The notes under the pieces were generated by a model. The model had not been told where the DNA came from, did not search any database, and was given only the letters and a program-made list of their open reading frames with translations. From contig CAJFCJ010000019.1 in the NCBI GenBank assembly GCA_904063045.1, forward strand, positions 1,689,700-1,753,699: a DNA stretch of 64,000 nt. The letters are read 5' to 3'. This document shows, piece by piece, positions 1 through 8,700 of the stretch. The DNA comes from Dimorphilus gyrociliatus. Its lineage: Eukaryota; Animalia; Annelida. Within the stretch, counting starts at the first letter, position 1. Every line of letters starts with the position of its first letter. Both the position numbers and the translations under genes were made by a program.

Positions 1-1170
1 CCCATTTACCAGTGCTAGGTCTTCCTGTTCCCCAGCTTCCAGTTCCCCAGTCACCAGTGCTGGGTCTTCCTGTTCCCCAACTTCCAGTTCCCCATTTACC
101 AGTGCTAGGTCTTCCTGTTCCCCAGCTTCCAGTTCCCCAATCACCAGTGCTAGGTCTTCCTGTTTCCCAACTTCCAGTTCCCCATTTACCAGTGCTAGGT
201 CTTCCTGTTCCCCAGCTTCCAGTTCCCCAATCACCAGTGCTAGGTCGTCCTGTTCCCCAGCTTCCAGTTCCCCAATCACCAGTGCTAGGTCGTCCTGTTC
301 CCCAGCTTCCAGTTCCCCATTTTCCTGTACTGGGCTTTCCAGTTCCCCATTTACCAGTGCTAGGTCTTCCTGTTCCCCAGCTTCCAGTTCCCCAGTCACC
401 AGTGCTAGGTCTTCCTGTTCCCCAACTTCCAGTTCCCCAATCACCAGTGCTAGGTCGTCCTGTTCCCCAGCTTCCAGTTCCCCATTTTCCTGTACTGGGC
501 TTTCCAGTTCCCCATTTACCAGTGCTAGGTCTTCCTGTTCCCCAGCTTCCAGTTCCCCAGTCACCAGTGCTAGGTCGTCCTGTTCCCCAACTTCCAGTTC
601 CCCATTTACCAGTGCTAGGTCTTCCTGTTCCCCAACTTCCAGTTCCCCATTTTCCTGTACTGGGCTTTCCGGTTCCCCAATAACCAGTGCCAGATCTTCC
701 TGTTCCATATCTTCCAGTTCCCCATCTTCCTGTTCCCCATTTGCCAGTTCCATATTTTCCAGTTCCCCATCTACCTGTTCCCTGTTTGCCAGTTCCCCAC
801 TGGCAAACACATGGTCCACTAGTTCCCCAATCGCCTGTTCCCCAATCTCCTGTTCCCCAATCACTTGTTCCCCAATCACCTGTTCCCCAATCACCTGTTC
901 CCCAATCGCTTGTTCCCCAATCGCCTGTTCCCCAGTCACTAGTTCCCCAATCACCAGTTCCCCAATCACCAGTTCCCCAATCGCTTGTTCCCCAATCGCC
1001 TGTTCCCCAATCACCTGTTCCCCAATCACCTGTTCCCCAATCACTAGTTCCCCAATCACTAGTTCCCCAATCACCAGTTCCCCAGTCACTAGTTCCCCAA
1101 TCACCAGTTCCCCAATCACCAGTTCCCCAATTGCCAGTTCCCCAATCGCCAGTTCCCCAATCACTTGTTC
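1..1170. repeat. Coding tandem repeat with a 15-nt unit (ccagttccccaatca-like) and 45-nt and 165-nt higher-order periods
   Basis: Directly visible. The variant tttcctgtac recurs at 321, 486 and 651, exactly 165 nt apart. Confidence 0.95.
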
Positions 1171-1422
1171 CCCAACCATTTGTTCCGCGACCGCCTGTTG
1201 CCCATCCAGGTTGGTCGCTTTCACATGTAGGAATTGACGAATTCCAATATTCCCACCAAACCCAAGGTGGATAATCTACTGAAATTTCTGAAAGAAAGTT
1301 AAATGATTAAAACATTAAAAAGTTTTTTGATTCTTACTTCTTGATTCTGCATAGCTTTGAAGAAGAACAAGTAGCACAAGGAGACGGAGCAACATTGTGC
1401 TTGTCAGCCCTTGAATGTTCAT
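1..1422 (-). CDS. Putative secreted Trp-Gly-Thr pentapeptide-repeat protein (3' end runs off the window)
   Basis: Exon 1 has ATG at 1422 or 1395 and reads MLLRLLVLLVLLQSYAESR (signal-peptide-like). A 50-nt GT-AG intron (1337-1288, gtaaga...ctttcag) joins in phase 1 to exon 2, which reads KISVDYPPWVWWEYWNSSIPTCESDQPGWATGGRGTNG, then (WGT[G/S]D)n, GPCVCQ, and (WGTG[K/R/S]/PSTG[K/D])n, with no stop down to base 1. Confidence 0.75.
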
Positions 1423-2369
1423 AACCAAATAAAATATGACGACAAATAATTCTTATATCAATGTTCTCAATATTAACAATATTGATTGAAATTGAGAAAT
1501 TCTTTAATATATAGTTTAAATCAGAATGTATTAGATATTATTGTCAGGAAAACATATCAGGTCATATTAATTATTTTAGTGAATGTCATTCTTTAGTTAA
1601 AAGTTAATGAGTAGAATTGGTAAGTAGTGTACTTCTAATTACAAATAAAAAATAGAAGTTTTTTGCTTTTTCAATAGTTTCTTTAAAAGCTTAGTGGAGC
1701 CATCTATTGTACTTTATTTTTTTCTCTTCGCTGAATGGTCACTTGCCAAGTTATTTGCATTAAAATTTTCAATGTAAACAAATGGTCTCCTGTTTTCTCA
1801 GTAATGGAAGTGTAATTTGGCAAAAAGTCCATAGTAGATTAATTATATGAAATAAAATTTTAGTTTAGCAAACTAATTAAGTGTTTTTCTAAATTAGGTT
1901 TGCCGTAAAAAGATAAATATATTTGTAATAAGCTGAGGCCGGCAAAGTTAATTTGCATATGCGCAACAATACATATTTTGATCTTAATTCGTTTCTCTTA
2001 ATATTCGCTTGTAAGCGTTATAAAAAGTCTTTTTGTTGATTAACATCAACGTATACCATCATATTTCTTCAGAATTATTAAAAAACACATCTAAATAGTC
2101 CGCTCTTGGAGTTTATCGACAAAGAACTACTTTTGTTTCGTGGCTCAGTAACCAACTTCCGTTTCCGTTCCTGGTTACGCTTTCAGGGCTTGGGCCATTG
2201 ATGATTTCGATATATTAGCATAGGTCTGAATAGTATCAAAAACAGTTTATTCAGATATAAAACAAGACAAGTTCAACATGTTTGGCCTAGGTTAGTGAAG
2301 ATGACAAGGATCAATACAGTTTATTGTAATATGACGGCTAGTTTGGCGTTTTATTTTACAGAATAAGTT

Positions 2370-3608
2370 ATGTCTTTGAACGATCAACGATCGTCCACTC
2401 CACCTCTGCCGGCCAAGCGTGAATTGTTGAGGATTAGCGCTCAAGTTATGCGACGAGAGGACGCGACAAACCTATGGAAACCTCTTGGCGGAACGAACAT
2501 GTGCTCCGTCGCAATAAAACCGACTTCAAGCTATGAATATGTCATAATTGGGGAGGTTGAAGGAAAAATGGTGCTTCGCTGTCCTATTCGCAAAGATCTG
2601 CAATACTGTAAACCTATGCCTACATTTCATCATTGGTGCTCAGAGAAACAACGCTTCGGTTTAACATTTCAAAGTGTTACCGACGCTGTAGCGTTCGATA
2701 AATGTTTATCAGGGGCGATAGACAAGCTTATAGATGGTAAGTGTTGTTTTAATCTATTATTCTACTATATATCAACGCCTTTTCTTTCTATCTTACCTAT
2801 TTCTTTACTCGGACGTCTTTGGTAAGTAATACCTTGAAGAGTACCTACTCTTCGACTAATCTTTCCACTAGTTCATATATCTATTATGAATTTGTCTTCA
2901 TGTTCTAGATAAACTTCCGACAGACACAGACGATGGCGAAGTCTTCGTAGCTGTAGAACTCCCTTTAGGTCCTTATAAAAAGGAATCTCCTGCAAAGAGT
3001 GCTCCCTCTCGTCTTGCTTCACCTTTAAGTGATTGTCCTATTTCAAGTTCAGCTTCTCACTTGGAGAGGATACATTACGTCCGTAGAACCCCACCACCAC
3101 AGCCATCACCGAAAGGAACACATGCTCTATCTTTTGAGATGACTGAATATTCTTACGTCCATCTTGCACCTTCCTCGTGCAAATCAACGACTATTGACGC
3201 TTCCAGACGAAAATTAACTATACAATTAGATGGTAAAAATGCAGTCCGATGTACATATTGCAAAGAGTATTTTAATCCTAACAATAATACCCCTTGTCGT
3301 CGATATCCGGAGCCAAAATGTATTAGACAAGCAACATGTCTATGCTGTGCCGATTGTCTGGTAAGGGTATATTTGTTACGTTCTATTGTTTTCAATTCAC
3401 CTTTACTCATATTTACTCCATTCAGATATGTCGTCTAAAAGTAGTCGGATGGAAAAAGTGGTGTTTAATAACAGTACTAGCGTTCTTTCTACCTTGCATT
3501 TGCTGTTACCCTATCTTATCACTTTCATACCGTTGTTCTATGTGTTCACGGAAAATGCACAAACCTTCAAATCTACTATCAAGTAAGGCAGAATTCGCGG
3601 AGGATTAA
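2370..3608 (+). CDS. SPRED: Sprouty-related EVH1 domain protein (exons 2370-2736, 2909-3360, 3426-3608)
   Basis: N-terminal EVH1 with SPRED-type motifs (CPIRKDLQYCKPMPTFHHW, FGLTFQS..DA.AFD). C-terminal Cys-rich SPR domain (RCTYCKEYF, CLCCADC, LPCICCYP). GT-AG introns keep the frame. Confidence 0.9.
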
Positions 3609-4044
3609 TTACGCTGATGGCCCAACGATCTAATTATATAACTGATACTACCAGGAGTTCTTTTTCCGTTTTTGGTGCTCTCGTTCAAGGTTACTTCAAA
3701 AAGAAACTTAACCGCTCCTGCAGCACGTTCGTTTCAGGTAAACGGCTTATTGCAAACTGTCTTTTTCTTATAGGCTTTAGAAAAAATTCAGAATTGATTC
3801 GGTAACTTTTTTCGCATAAATATACAGTATATACATTTAAACTGCCATATTTTTTATTTTAAAATAATTTTAGTAGTCATTTTTGAGATTATTTAATGAA
3901 AATTGTAGCGCTGATGAAGCGAACTTTACCTCTTTAAACAATAATCAGTATATTAACCCTAAAACATAAACACAATAGTTAATGAAATTAAATAGAATTT
4001 CTTTCTTTATTCATTTATACATTCAATAATTTGCAAGAAAGTTT

Positions 4045-5796
4045 CTAAGACAATTCTTTATGACCCTTTTTTTCGAAATATTTAGGCTTATACTTCGAGA
4101 ATTTCCTATAAAAAAATTAATAAAACATTAAGTCAAGAGCAGTTGTAACTTGTAATATAAATATTATATTTAAACTTACTTGATACGCTTCCGAGGTTCA
4201 ATTATGTTCCTTTTGCAAAAACTATTATATCGATCCTTTAGCAAATCACCTTCAGGCTAAGTATTTAAATTTTACATAAGTAATAATTTCAAAAAGTGTA
4301 AATTTTCCCTAAATACTAACTTTTAACCTCCTCAAATTACTTTCCAATTCGTTACTTAGCTTCAATTCCACACTAGGTTCTTCATATCTGAATACAAGTA
4401 GTTTTATAACAAAAATTTTAAATGAGTGAGTGTTATTTTATAATTTTACTTTATAGATCCTAATTTTTTCGTTCTATTTTTTTTACTTTCGCTCATTTTC
4501 GCCTTCAGGCGTTTTCTCATAACTGAGGCCATTTTATGTTGATGGAGCTCTTCCTTAATTTGTTTCAGCCTTAAGGAATAGAAAGAAAAAAAAATAGATA
4601 ATTATTTGTTATTGGTTAATACAAACGTAAATACAACCTATAAATATCGTGGTTCTTTATTTTCTTTATTTTTTCTAATTTTTGAACTTTTTCCTGTAGT
4701 TTCCTCGCTTTTTCCTTCTTTCTTTGCTTTTCCGTTTTTTTATCTTCTCTACTAATAGTTGCTCTATGCGTAACTTGAACATCATCACTTTCATCACCGG
4801 AATCATCTTCCGCATCCTCATTATCAATAATGCCTCCGGACATTTCCTTGAGATATTCCTCTTCTGAAATAGGTGTCTTCGGGAACTTAGCATTCAGGGA
4901 ATTATAAATCTTTTGTTGTTCCTTTAATTTTTTCTTTTCGATTTCGGTTGCTCTTTTTAGCAATTCTTGGTGATCTTCAAATGTTGGATTATAAGAAGCA
5001 CCTGGATGTGGAGCTGTTATCGCTTCGATTTCAGACGGCTTTTTGTGATAAGTTTTTGGAGTTTTGACTCTCTTGGTTCTAGTAACTTTTAAGAAATGTT
5101 CATCGGGACTATTCATATCGTTATTTCCTGGAATTTTATAGCAGTTTGATTTTAGTCTTTTTTAGACTGTTTTAATGACAAAATCACTAACCGTCTTCTG
5201 CATCATTCCATATATCCTTAGAATTTCTTTGACGATTTACCTTCCGTTTTACAGGAACAGATTTAACAGTAGTTTTCTGTTAATATATCAACGTAAGTGA
5301 AATGAATAAAGTCATTTAAAAATATCTTATCTTACCGCAGTTTTCACTTTACTTGTTTTATTAGTTTTTTTCTGCGATCTAAAAAATTTTAAAATTAGAC
5401 ATGTTATATTTTAACTGAAAGATTAAACCTTTTAATCTGAGCAGCTTGATGATCAGGCAGCAAACCAGAAAAACACTTTAAAGGCTTGTTTGCATTGCGT
5501 TTTGAAGGTTTTAATTCAGCATTTGAATCACCCGGTTTTTTATCTATAAAAAACAATTCTTCGTTCTTTTTCTCTCTCGCTAAACCACTGGAATGAATAA
5601 AAACGTGCAAAACGTGCTTGTTTGAGCGATAATAGGGAGAATTACTAAACAGTTAAAGAACATACCCAGTTCTCTTTTGTAATGCCTCATCTTCAAGAAA
5701 TTCCTCAATTTCAGATATATTGACCTTTCTCCATGACTTTTTTTTGTTTTTGCTTAACTTTTTTCTTTTAGTCTTCTTCTCAAGTGTTGTATTCAT
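4045..5796 (-). CDS. NOP53: Ribosome biogenesis protein NOP53/GLTSCR2, multi-exon
   Basis: Starts MNTTLEKKTKRKKLSKNKKKSWRKVNISEIEEFLEDEALQKRTG. Contains APHPGASYNPTFEDHQELL and the C-terminal PEGDLLKDRYNSFCKRNIIEPR. Stop TAG at 4047-4045. Confidence 0.9.
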
Positions 5797-8700
5797 CTTG
5801 TTATTTTTCTTTTTTCAAAAAAAACTGGTAAATATCGTGAGTGTTGCTACAAAATTTTGTAGGACACTTACCCCCTCTATCGTGGTACGATATGTCCCAA
5901 TTGAAAGACGTAAATTAGTCGTTTTATGTGATTAAATATTCAGCTTTTTTTAAATAAATTATCTAATAATGTCATTTTTTAATATTTTGCCTATAAAAAG
6001 TTTAGATTACTAGAAAAATAGCAAATGATTAAAATTATGTAGATTATTGAAAAGTTTGAATATTTTTGATTGTAGAATATTTAAAAAAGTATTATCTTTT
6101 TTATTAATAAGAGATTTATGCTATAATTAATTTATGTGGAAAAAACTAGCGTTGTTATTTATAACTTCTAAGTTTGCCCGTAGCAAAAGCAAACCAAGAA
6201 ATTGTAATTAACGTTCTTCTCGGACCTCATGTTGCCTTCGATCATTAATAATACGCTAGATGCTTTTCGATGATTGACTTTATAACAAATTGTATTTTAC
6301 TGTTATTTTTACATCTTTAAAAATGCTTTCTAATTAAAAAAGCAAATTACTGATCACGAAAAGGAACTAGAAGGATTTAACAATTACTGACCTTTGTTGA
6401 AAATGATGTATGTATTGATAGTATATAAAAAAAGAGTTTTAAAAACTGATCGTTTCGAATCTTCTTTACATAAACTGTTGATTATTTAAAAGAGAGATTT
6501 TTATGTTGCCAGATATCAATAAAAAGTAGAATTTAATATAAATACATAAAAAATCCACTTGTTTGTCATTGAACACTGTATACAGTATAATAAGGAGACG
6601 AGAATTGAACAATATACCTAGTTCTTTCAATTTGAAAAAGTTTCTAGTTCATTGAATTATAGAATTATTCAATATCATTTGGTTTGAGATAGAAACTTTT
6701 AAAAGAGAATAGAGGGGAATCAGACATTTGAAATAAAATCAAGTTTTATATTTCCTGTGAGAGTCAGCTTGAATAAATCTTTTCTCTTTATGGAATATCT
6801 AATGAATTGTTTATTTGTTATATCGGCCTCTTGTAGTTTTGTGAATAAAAATTTACAGCATATTATTTTTTCATTTAAGTTTGTAGGTTGGCTACAAAAA
6901 CTTGTTAGAAATTCAGGTTATCGATAGATTCTACTAAGGCAAATTGTTTACAATAAACTTTTAACTACAAGTTACGTATTAGTATTTTTTTCTACCATTT
7001 ATAAGAATACTGCATAAAACTTATCAGATAACATTCAGAATGTTATAGTGTAGAACTCTTGATAATCATCTTTTCGAATTGCCCTCCGGGAAAGAACAAT
7101 CAGAAATTTGAAGTTTTTTTGAGTGTGTAGATGTTAGATAAACATAGCTAAAATTTCAAAATTAACCAACTATGCTGGCGAATGCTAAAGTAAAGTAGGA
7201 GTGAGAGATTAGGGCGTTTTTTTTTCCATGGGCAAAGTGATGGAGACAGAGACAGACAGTCAAAGAAACGGAGAGAGAAAGGAATCTAATGATCATTTTA
7301 ATTATTCTTAGTTTAGTAAAATTATTTTTGCCATTCGTAAAATTTTTAAAAGAACGTTTAATCTTCTATTTTATTGTTAGAATTAGAAAATAATTGTAAA
7401 AGTAACGAAAACGAAAATTAATTGTCTACTTTCATATTAATAATGGAAATTTGTCTAAAAAAATGTCTTTTTGTATTTCTTTTTTTATTTCGAGAATCAA
7501 TAACTTTCATTAATATAAAAATTCAATTGGAATTTATATTACTTGTTAAAAATGCCCGCTTATTGTAAAAGAAATAAATATCGCTTATACGGCTTTAATC
7601 AATTATAATAGCCTTTAGGAATAATTACTTCACAATTAATTTTAGTTATTACTGTTTTTTGAATAGCAATTCATATTTTTTCGCCTTGAATATGTTGACT
7701 GATTTAATGTTGGGGCTGTTTTTTCTTTAAAAAATAAATCACTACGTCTTCCAGATACAATTATTTCGAATAAATTATGTAAAACGTGCTAGATTGCACT
7801 TCCAGAAGTCAGTGGTGATTGAGGATCTAAATACGGGACTGAGATTAAACATACTGCAAAATAAATGGTAGTGTAGGTTATGTACATACTGAATGGATTG
7901 CTCAAGAAATTGAGAAGTTTCTAAGCTACTCATAATCAAAATAGAGAACGAGATGATAATCTCTTTGAAAGGAGGATCCTCTTACAATATACATTTCAAT
8001 ATCGGATTGAGGACATACAAAATTCTTAAGACTAGAAAGATAGAATTCACATTGTAATCTATCATTTGTAGAAAGCTTCATCATATATTTCAATTCAAGA
8101 CTATTGCCTGTTAAGTAGAAACGCTAATCCTTAATACGAATAAATTGATCCTTTCAATTTATTAATTATATCGAAAAGAAGTGATTTTAATAATTCTGGC
8201 AGTTCATTCGCTTTAAACTTTTGTAAGCGTCAGAGACTATTTATCCAAGCCATTTGAGATACGAGCTATCTTCGAAACAAGAATGAATGTTTGTACGCTT
8301 TTAATGTATAGTATGTGATATTATCTGTCACATACGATGACGCTTACTTATCTTTGCTAAGCTCTTTCAATGAGAGCAAATGCTTTAAAACTATCTAGTT
8401 CCTCTCCATCGTGCTTCACTCTTTTTATCTCTCTTTTTGTTGACAAAGTGATTCGCAGATTTATTTTTACGCTATTAGAAACGCTCGAATAGCGGTCTGG
8501 CGTTCAAATGGATAGCACAATTCCTTAATTGATGGCAAGAAAGAGGTACTTTACGATAAGCTGTAGATAAGCGCTTATAACATAGACCCTAGAGTACCCT
8601 CAACGTACCAACCAAGTCTAGTTGATCGGTCACTCTTTTCCATGGTTGTCTTAGTACTCACTCATCTACTTTGCTCTTGTCTTATCACCATTGGCAACAG

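Follow-up and report, generated by a model that had tools for sequence, protein, structure and literature searches.

The 64,000-nt window analysed here belongs to the genome of the annelid Dimorphilus gyrociliatus (contig C19, CAJFCJ010000019.1, positions 1689700-1753699, the first of which is window position 1), and its first 1,422 nt hold, on the minus strand, the beginning of a gene whose product carries a long array of Trp-Gly-Thr pentapeptides. The genome is described as 73.8 Mb in about 350 scaffolds with a median intron of 66 bp (PMC7854359). Searches within the organism's own genome covered an assembly of 77.9 Mb in 349 contigs. The complete gene, termed the repeat gene below, comprises 11 exons at C19:1686292-1691121, with a coding sequence of 4113 nt specifying 1371 residues; window positions 1-1422 correspond to exons 1-2, and the remainder reaches 3.4 kb past the window edge. 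It was modelled on a 6-kb segment that overlaps this edge, L003 (C19:1685701-1691700; L003 position equals window position plus 3999). The list of open reading frames (ORFs) for the window shows only the Pro-rich plus-strand shadow of the array, as the sequence-only reading had remarked, since the actual ORF extends beyond the window.

Translated from its N terminus, the model specifies a predicted signal peptide, a Trp-rich head of 27 residues, 148 pentapeptides (740 residues), a WAP module, a thyroglobulin type-1 (TY-1) module with four Cys, an 8-Cys module, a Kunitz module, a second 8-Cys module, a further TY-1 module and a Cys-free module of ~110 residues, followed by an acidic stalk, a single hydrophobic helix 26 residues long and a ~35-residue tail. 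The minus-strand exons downstream of the repeat exon (exon 2) are short, and their translations are rich in Cys. The transmembrane segment lies with the acidic stalk in exon 10, where the Kyte-Doolittle 19-residue maximum reaches 3.04, and is followed by the basic stretch RKSSGAK; the ectodomain contains 12-13 N-x-S/T sequons and 42 Cys, the cytoplasmic tail none of either. Introns 1-10 measure 50, 50, 62, 77, 68, 58, 55, 73, 158 and 63 nt, all with GT..AG boundaries. The exon phases sum to 1371 codons, and the module-bearing exons 2-7 all begin in phase 1.

Evidence for transcription comes from public sequencing runs, foremost X5, whose kind is unrecorded; the other runs with small shares of the locus are four metatranscriptomes (X1-X4). 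X5 contains 0.69 of the sampled words from the 6-kb locus, a share that would imply a transcript including much of the 2.3-kb repeat exon. RNA contigs were aligned to L003:300-3050, a span that takes in the 3' exons along with 110 nt at the end of the repeat exon, and those from X5 prove eight of the ten introns (2, 3 and 5-10), each reading CT..AC on the plus strand and hence GT..AG on the minus strand. Seven of these eight joints agree exactly with the sequence-based model. An originally modelled 98-nt intron 2 was rejected, as the RNA joins 48 nt further on, leaving an intron of 50 nt (L003 2891-2940) and lengthening the repeat exon by 16 residues, a Cys/His/Lys-rich linker ending KHKFAH. 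Intron 4 lies within an AT repeat, and contig pieces at both of its flanks fit it with three letters to spare. The final 83 nt of the repeat exon are spliced to the WAP exon in RNA contigs, and one 1046-nt X5 contig extends from exon 6 into the terminal part of the repeat exon, which places repeat and inhibitor cassette on one mRNA. The coral metatranscriptome X1, from a separate study, independently shows the joint at L003 2134/2203, and a loose end after L003 992 in that run has the same letters as 1151-1162, where exon 9 ends. The repeat gene is thus transcribed, and from intron 2 on its splicing follows the model. The hidden minus-strand gene proposed by the sequence-only reading is therefore real, given spliced contigs of minus-strand polarity; the free secreted repeat protein that it envisaged is not what the locus encodes, since RNA joins the array to WAP, TY-1 and Kunitz exons, a transmembrane helix and a short tail. 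The X1 spliced transcripts (within L003 788-2367) are at least 99% identical to the genome, with two T>C differences at L003 993 and 2093. That coral sample apparently harbours the worm itself or a strain very near to it.

The 5' end of the model is an ATG at window 1422, and another ATG in the same frame follows at 1395. Exon 1 would encode a 28-residue leader with the hydrophobic core LLRLLVLLVLL (Kyte-Doolittle 19-residue maximum 2.02), ending QSYA/ESR with S/A at -3/-1. The exon 2 frame is open for 797 codons from the acceptor (804 residues in full), closes 7 codons upstream of the acceptor and contains no Met, so that an upstream start exon is required. The predicted junction at window 1338/1287 is backed by canonical splice sites and by an intron size equal to that of the RNA-proven intron 2 (50 nt). 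Several details that had been read from the window alone were borne out here: a signal-peptide exon with a 50-nt intron recurs in our own reading of the sequence, and the Trp/Cys head YPPWVWWEYW occupies 27 residues with one Cys. The early stop just outside the window that would have undone the gene does not occur, the frame remaining open for all 797 codons.

The array itself consists of 148 pentapeptides over 740 residues with no insertion or deletion, 80 of them inside the window, where more than 75 had been claimed. Position 1 of the unit is Trp in 98, Pro in 32 and Tyr in 14 of the 148; position 2 is Gly (112) or Ser (30), position 4 Gly (135) or Ser (10), and position 5 Arg (49), Asp (35), Lys (29) or Ser (24). 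Thr occupies position 3 in all units except two (146/148), and these two are the CxC units PCVCQ and PCICP, both five residues long and in register. Overall the array is 34.1% Gly, 19.7% Thr, 13.2% Trp, 8.8% Ser and 4.5% Pro. Its charge is split between an acidic N-terminal block (-21) and a following ~600 net-basic residues totalling about +63. Tandem Repeats Finder (TRF) scores the array at 500-1800, with periods of 15, 45, 165 and 300 nt, and the 165-nt higher-order copies match at 95%, an identity that points to recent expansion. Codon entropies of Thr by position are 0.06/0.10/0.99; the units of the acidic block differ from one another only synonymously or by Gly/Ser exchange, and divergence among units is concentrated, in the minus-strand frame, at the third positions of Thr and Gly codons. 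This third-position variation fits purifying selection on the minus-strand protein. The blocks of the array are listed with the other features in Table 1.

Table 1. Coordinates of the repeat gene, its RNA joints, the blocks of its array and its two paralogues (C19, C15 and C4, contigs of the assembly; L003 and window numbering as defined in the text).
Feature	Coordinates	Strand	Remarks
Exon 1	C19:1691037-1691121	minus	
Exon 2 (repeat exon)	C19:1688641-1690986	minus	
Exon 3	C19:1688450-1688590	minus	
Exon 4	C19:1688145-1688387	minus	
Exon 5	C19:1687903-1688067	minus	
Exon 6	C19:1687277-1687834	minus	
Exon 7	C19:1687128-1687218	minus	
Exon 8	C19:1687009-1687072	minus	
Exon 9	C19:1686852-1686935	minus	
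Exon 10	C19:1686439-1686693	minus	
Exon 11	C19:1686295-1686375	minus	adds 27 residues and TGA stop
Exon 1 in window: start codon and predicted signal peptide	window 1338..1422	minus	28 codons + 1 nt; sequence reading
Intron 1	window 1288..1337	minus	50 nt, GTAAGA..TTTCAG, phase 1; sequence reading
Exon 2 head	window 1205..1287	minus	27 non-repeat residues, YPPWVWWEYW, one N-x-S sequon, one Cys
Units 1-26	window 815..1204	minus	acidic, mostly WGT[G/S]D, net charge -21, 25 Trp; TRF period 15, 25.5 copies
Unit 27	window 800..814	minus	CxC unit PCVCQ, net charge 0
Units 28-36	window 665..799	minus	basic, W/Y alternation, [W/Y]GTG[K/R], net charge +8
Units 37-80 of central block	window 1..664	minus	super-repeat PSTG[D/K] WGTGS WGTGR
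Units 37-114, whole central block	runs past window	minus	15-residue super-repeat PSTG[D/K] WGTGS WGTGR, net charge +29
Units 115-130	outside window	minus	basic, W/Y alternation, net charge +15
Unit 131	outside window	minus	CxC unit PCICP, net charge 0
Units 132-148	exon ends C19:1688641	minus	basic, net charge +11
X5 splice joints, introns 10 to 6	L003 675/739, 993/1152, 1235/1309, 1372/1428, 1518/1577	minus	
X5 splice joints, introns 5, 3, 2	L003 2134/2203, 2687/2750, 2890/2941	minus	
C15 paralogue	C15:902001-912000, local ~1990-8390	plus	antistasin 7.3e-8, WAP 2.2e-7, TY-1, Kunitz, 8-Cys
C4 paralogue	C4:1393001-1402000	plus	repeated 8-Cys/TY-1/Kunitz modules

Searches for relatives of the array uphold the claim that the repeat belongs to no recognised family, with neither Pfam, a word search nor, among its 150 best matches, HMMER returning a true relative. 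A Pfam scan of a 765-residue repeat piece gave no family at E<=1, pentapeptide-repeat PF00805 included; the consensus of that family, A(D/N)LXX with a central Leu/Phe, differs from the W-G-T-G-x unit found here. A word search with the 797-residue open frame yielded 218 candidates, none at E<=0.01. HMMER against 1.84 billion representative proteins returned 2143 matches at E<=0.001, the best 150 of which are low-complexity Gly/Thr pentapeptide proteins (GTGDD, GTGRL, GTARH and the like), none of them with more than one W-[GS]-T-[GS] unit or with periodic Trp. These were rejected as relatives, being matches of composition. The gene's own product is absent from both protein collections searched, and for this reason the public protein sets seem to lack the repeat exon. 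The best scores in the ESM Atlas, 0.80 and 0.77, fall under the meaningful level. Literature searches gave only chance matches for the pentapeptide strings and, for Trp-rich adhesive repeats, only the fungal adhesin BAD-1, whose WxxWxxW is a different motif (PMC3708853). Within the genome, the array found itself and the shadow frames of two mucin-like genes, and no paralogue of the array. Both of these unrelated, secreted-looking genes lie on the minus strand (C126:6655-9996, local 1401-2363, and C14:61907-65353, local 552-2534), each with a shadow frame that gave a spurious match, and they combine EGF-like or furin-like Cys-rich parts with long TTEVP or PTPTT mucin-type repeats. Two local motifs were also considered for the array and discarded. 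C-mannosylation needs WxxW, and the spacing in the array is WxxxxW; the RTX-type calcium turn GGxGxD does not fit. The conclusion that the protein matches no described family holds for the array, which is an orphan, and fails for the chain as a whole, which carries well-described WAP, TY-1 and Kunitz modules.

These modules were identified by Pfam scans made exon by exon against curated cut-offs of 21 (Kunitz), 20.8 (WAP) and 20.6 bits (TY-1), all of which are exceeded. Kunitz/BPTI (PF00014) scores 56.8 bits (E 2.5e-15); WAP (PF00095) scores 28.8 bits (E 1.5e-6) over profile positions 2-39 of 41, in an exon with 6 Cys; and two copies of TY-1 (PF00086) score 43.5 and 39.6 bits (E 2.1e-11 and 3.6e-10), the first of them with 4 Cys, not 6. 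The closest relatives of the Kunitz module in the PDB are SmCI of the annelid Sabellastarte (9.7e-18) and human HAI-1 (3.1e-16). Read by eye against the standard BPTI numbering, the exon 6 Kunitz module has both Cys14 and Cys38 replaced and Thr at P1, that is, it departs from the six Cys and suited P1 residue of the family; the Kunitz fold is probably kept. The two 8-Cys modules (L003 2204-2365 and 1788-1952, minus strand) are related to each other at E 0.002 and have no Pfam match at E<=1 and no PDB sequence match at E<=10; they may represent an undescribed small disulfide domain. This module is ~50 residues long, with a core of roughly C-x3-P-x-A-x-C-x2-[ND]-P-C-x2-C-x3-F ... C, and always adjoins TY-1 or Kunitz. 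A word search with the Kunitz/8-Cys/TY exon gave no match among candidates limited to proteins of 126-400 residues. The scan of exons 5-10 at E<=1 returned Kunitz and TY-1 only, without the EpCAM N- and C-domain profiles that flank TY-1 in EpCAM/Trop2, and the gene is not assigned to that family.

Between cassette and stalk lies the Cys-free juxtamembrane module. Exon 9 reads VVRGSIIVHYEV, reminiscent of the SEA self-cleavage site G/S-V-V-V, with a GSIIV motif (RGSIIVHYEV), and 13 SEA domains from the same genome have GS[IV]I at the corresponding place in the profile. Four short exons make up the module, and these were searched singly with a local SEA profile built from the 13 domains. Weak matches are found in collinear order, in exon 7 at profile positions 6-15, exon 8 at 43-57 and exon 9 at 63-81. 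BLASTP of exon 9 against the juxtamembrane ORF of the C15 paralogue gave no match. The juxtamembrane module may thus be described as SEA-like, an assignment that is unproven. A six-frame search for SEA domains finds 27 other places in the genome, all elsewhere and many in single exons; 8 are above the Pfam cut-off alone, and a ninth (on C5) exceeds it only when in-frame neighbours are included. Of the 13 retrieved domains, most have an intact G-S-[IV]-I, making them candidate self-cleaving surface proteins.

The 8-Cys module recurs, in several copies, in two further genes, at C15:~904-910 kb and C4:~1393-1401 kb (E 1.7e-7 and 2.7e-4). Both share 8-Cys/TY/Kunitz modules and a transmembrane helix with the repeat gene, and neither has a W-G-T-G-x array. 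At its C terminus the C15 paralogue has the module order of the repeat gene: Kunitz, 8-Cys and TY come first, then a Cys-free module containing a G-S-I motif, and finally stalk and transmembrane helix. The C4 paralogue has, in place of the array, a classical Thr/Pro-rich, mucin-like stalk (local ~6912-7109), with its helix at ~7730-7915. Short W/G/K/R-rich low-complexity linkers stand before the WAP module and inside the TY-1 module of the C15 paralogue, and the array may, at low confidence, have expanded from W/G/K-rich linkers of this kind.

Comparison with known systems suggests a membrane-anchored compound inhibitor, or a coat protein resembling mucins, that carries an orphan Trp-Gly-Thr pentapeptide polymer. 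Transmembrane mucins of the MUC1/MUC13 type share with it a signal peptide, a long N-terminal repeat with regular Thr, a G-S-[IV]-[IV]-V juxtamembrane motif, a single transmembrane helix and a short tail. The signal peptide, helix and tail of the repeat protein are indicated by hydropathy, with exons 10-11 RNA-proven. Its array departs from the Pro/Thr/Ser-dominated repeat of such mucins (34% Gly and 13% Trp, with Ser, Thr and Pro together 33%), an inhibitor cassette stands between array and membrane, and SEA identity is without statistical support. HAI-1 and HAI-2 (SPINT1/2) are likewise type I membrane proteins with extracellular Kunitz domains; the repeat protein differs in having one Kunitz, no MANSC or LDLa, and additional WAP, TY-1 and 8-Cys modules as well as the 740-residue array. 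Eppin, WFIKKN, papilin and SmCI combine several inhibitor module types per chain, but are secreted, soluble and devoid of a low-complexity polymer. The VPGVG repeat of elastin, GPGGX of flagelliform silk and GHGxY of squid beak resemble the array in that they repeat every five residues, are high in Gly and place an aromatic or hydrophobic residue at regular intervals. Those proteins are elastic or form coacervates; they have no sequence relation to the array and, unlike it, are not membrane-anchored. Finally, the many WG dipeptides amid Gly/Ser/Thr/Asp recall the Ago-hook repeats of GW182-type proteins, which are cytosolic or nuclear, whereas the array follows a predicted signal peptide and is continuous with disulfide- and sequon-rich extracellular modules; Ago-hook identity was rejected on grounds of compartment.

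Taken together, these features lead us to view the repeat protein, with moderate confidence and as regards function by way of inference, as a cell-surface coat protein, a charge-blocked, flexible and probably glycosylated brush on a protease-inhibitor base. The chain would insert as a type I membrane protein with the array outermost, and the array would form a flexible, Gly-rich, probably glycosylated brush of at most ~250 nm. Trp/Tyr and Arg/Lys, recurring along it at regular intervals, could knit neighbouring molecules through cation-pi contacts, and the acidic tip of one chain, set against the basic bodies of its neighbours, could with the CxC disulfides build up a surface coat, serving either as a glycocalyx or as a layer to which cuticle or mucus is anchored. 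The inhibitor modules at the base would shield the trypsin-sensitive polymer and the cell surface from proteases, a placement that makes functional sense because a flexible polymer with a Lys or Arg every 5-15 residues would be easy prey for trypsin-like enzymes. The GSIIV motif further hints at possible SEA-type cleavage and shedding. More speculatively, and with rather little weight attached to it, the array can be pictured as an extracellular sticker-and-spacer polyampholyte grafted to the membrane, which might form a gel- or coacervate-like coat via cation-pi contacts, acid-base pairing and CxC locks, or act as a Trp ladder gripping cuticle or mucus polysaccharide, and which perhaps arose from the W/G/K-rich linkers mentioned above.

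Several observations weigh against the coat-protein reading. Glycosylation of the array is a guess, given 34% Gly, 13% Trp, 33% Ser, Thr and Pro, and no classical mucin domain. Inhibitory activity is uncertain because the Kunitz module combines loss of the Cys14-Cys38 pair with Thr at P1 and the first TY module lacks a Cys pair. The 5' junction, and hence the signal peptide, is predicted from sequence. As for the juxtamembrane module, Pfam SEA (PF01390) has no match at the repeat locus in the single-exon scans and the six-frame genome search, the local profile scores of 1.5-4.1 bits compare with 2.5 bits for a control exon, and the equivalent region of the C15 paralogue is likewise without a SEA match.

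Of the alternative explanations, the one that survives best, though we consider it improbable, is that the membrane form is a precursor whose ectodomain is cut at the juxtamembrane module or by a sheddase to become adhesive, egg-cocoon, mucus or cuticle matrix. The position of GSIIV where SEA domains self-cleave, shared with the 13 domains noted above, would favour such release, as would the resemblance of charge blocks and aromatics to coacervating adhesive proteins; the word depth in X5 of ~2000-3000, against 249 for a contig of the neighbouring gene, has also been counted in its favour, though depth cannot rank genes. SEA membership, however, is not significant, and retention of the transmembrane helix and cytoplasmic tail by the paralogues speaks for a function at the membrane. 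The adhesive, cocoon or cuticle role suggested at the outset would require an ectodomain that is either shed or active at the cell surface.

A beta-solenoid with a Thr ladder, presenting for instance an ice-binding or mineral-binding surface, was suggested by the strict five-residue period over 740 residues and the near-invariance of Thr. We hold it to be very unlikely: no pentapeptide-repeat or other Pfam family matches at E<=1, stacked strands sit badly with Gly at two of the five positions and with Pro in every third unit of the central block, and an odd period makes Thr alternate between both faces of an extended strand, so the proposal is left without support. AlphaFold2 without alignment found no regular structure in the head and acidic block (pLDDT, the predicted local distance difference test, 42.8; no secondary structure), though the exon holding the Kunitz domain failed too as a control (pLDDT 34.4), and the prediction is therefore uninformative on disorder or solenoid. 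Fainter still is the prospect of a polyprotein precursor cut after each Lys/Arg into W-G-T-G-type peptides. Lys or Arg does end 78 of the 148 units, but these are monobasic sites with no dibasic ones among them, basic residues are wholly absent from the acidic block, and the array belongs to the same polypeptide as a Cys-rich inhibitor cassette and a transmembrane anchor, unlike known peptide precursors. That there is no minus-strand gene, only a satellite with an accidental open frame or genuine Pro-rich plus-strand ORFs, as the purely plus-strand ORF list and the presence of at most one stop in three of the six frames of the array might suggest, is refuted by spliced contigs in which the array is connected, with the splice polarity of the minus strand, to exons further downstream, by phase continuous into Pfam domains and by variation that is synonymous in the minus frame, and is barely credible.

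Two further coding regions adjoin the repeat gene. A plus-strand multi-exon WD40-like gene (C19:1682180-1685920) converges on its 3' end, and a 4798-nt X5 contig of this gene ends at L003 466, ~130 nt from the repeat-gene stop, so that the 3' ends nearly touch. A 151-codon plus-strand ORF at window 2370-2825, WH1/EVH1-like by eye, lies ~950 nt upstream in divergent orientation.

Trp is the rarest residue in proteins, and here 98 of them stand at fixed five-residue spacing over 740 residues, with divergence at synonymous sites that points to selection on the protein. If the array indeed forms a surface-grafted, charge-blocked cation-pi network, it would offer a natural design for research on bioadhesion and condensates, and would be a rare case of such a polymer built onto its own protease-inhibitor base. 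Should it be only a fast-evolving spacer, the locus would still provide a complete, RNA-supported model for a gene missed by ORF tracks. The paralogues, for their part, show that membrane-anchored compound inhibitors constitute a small family in this compact annelid genome.

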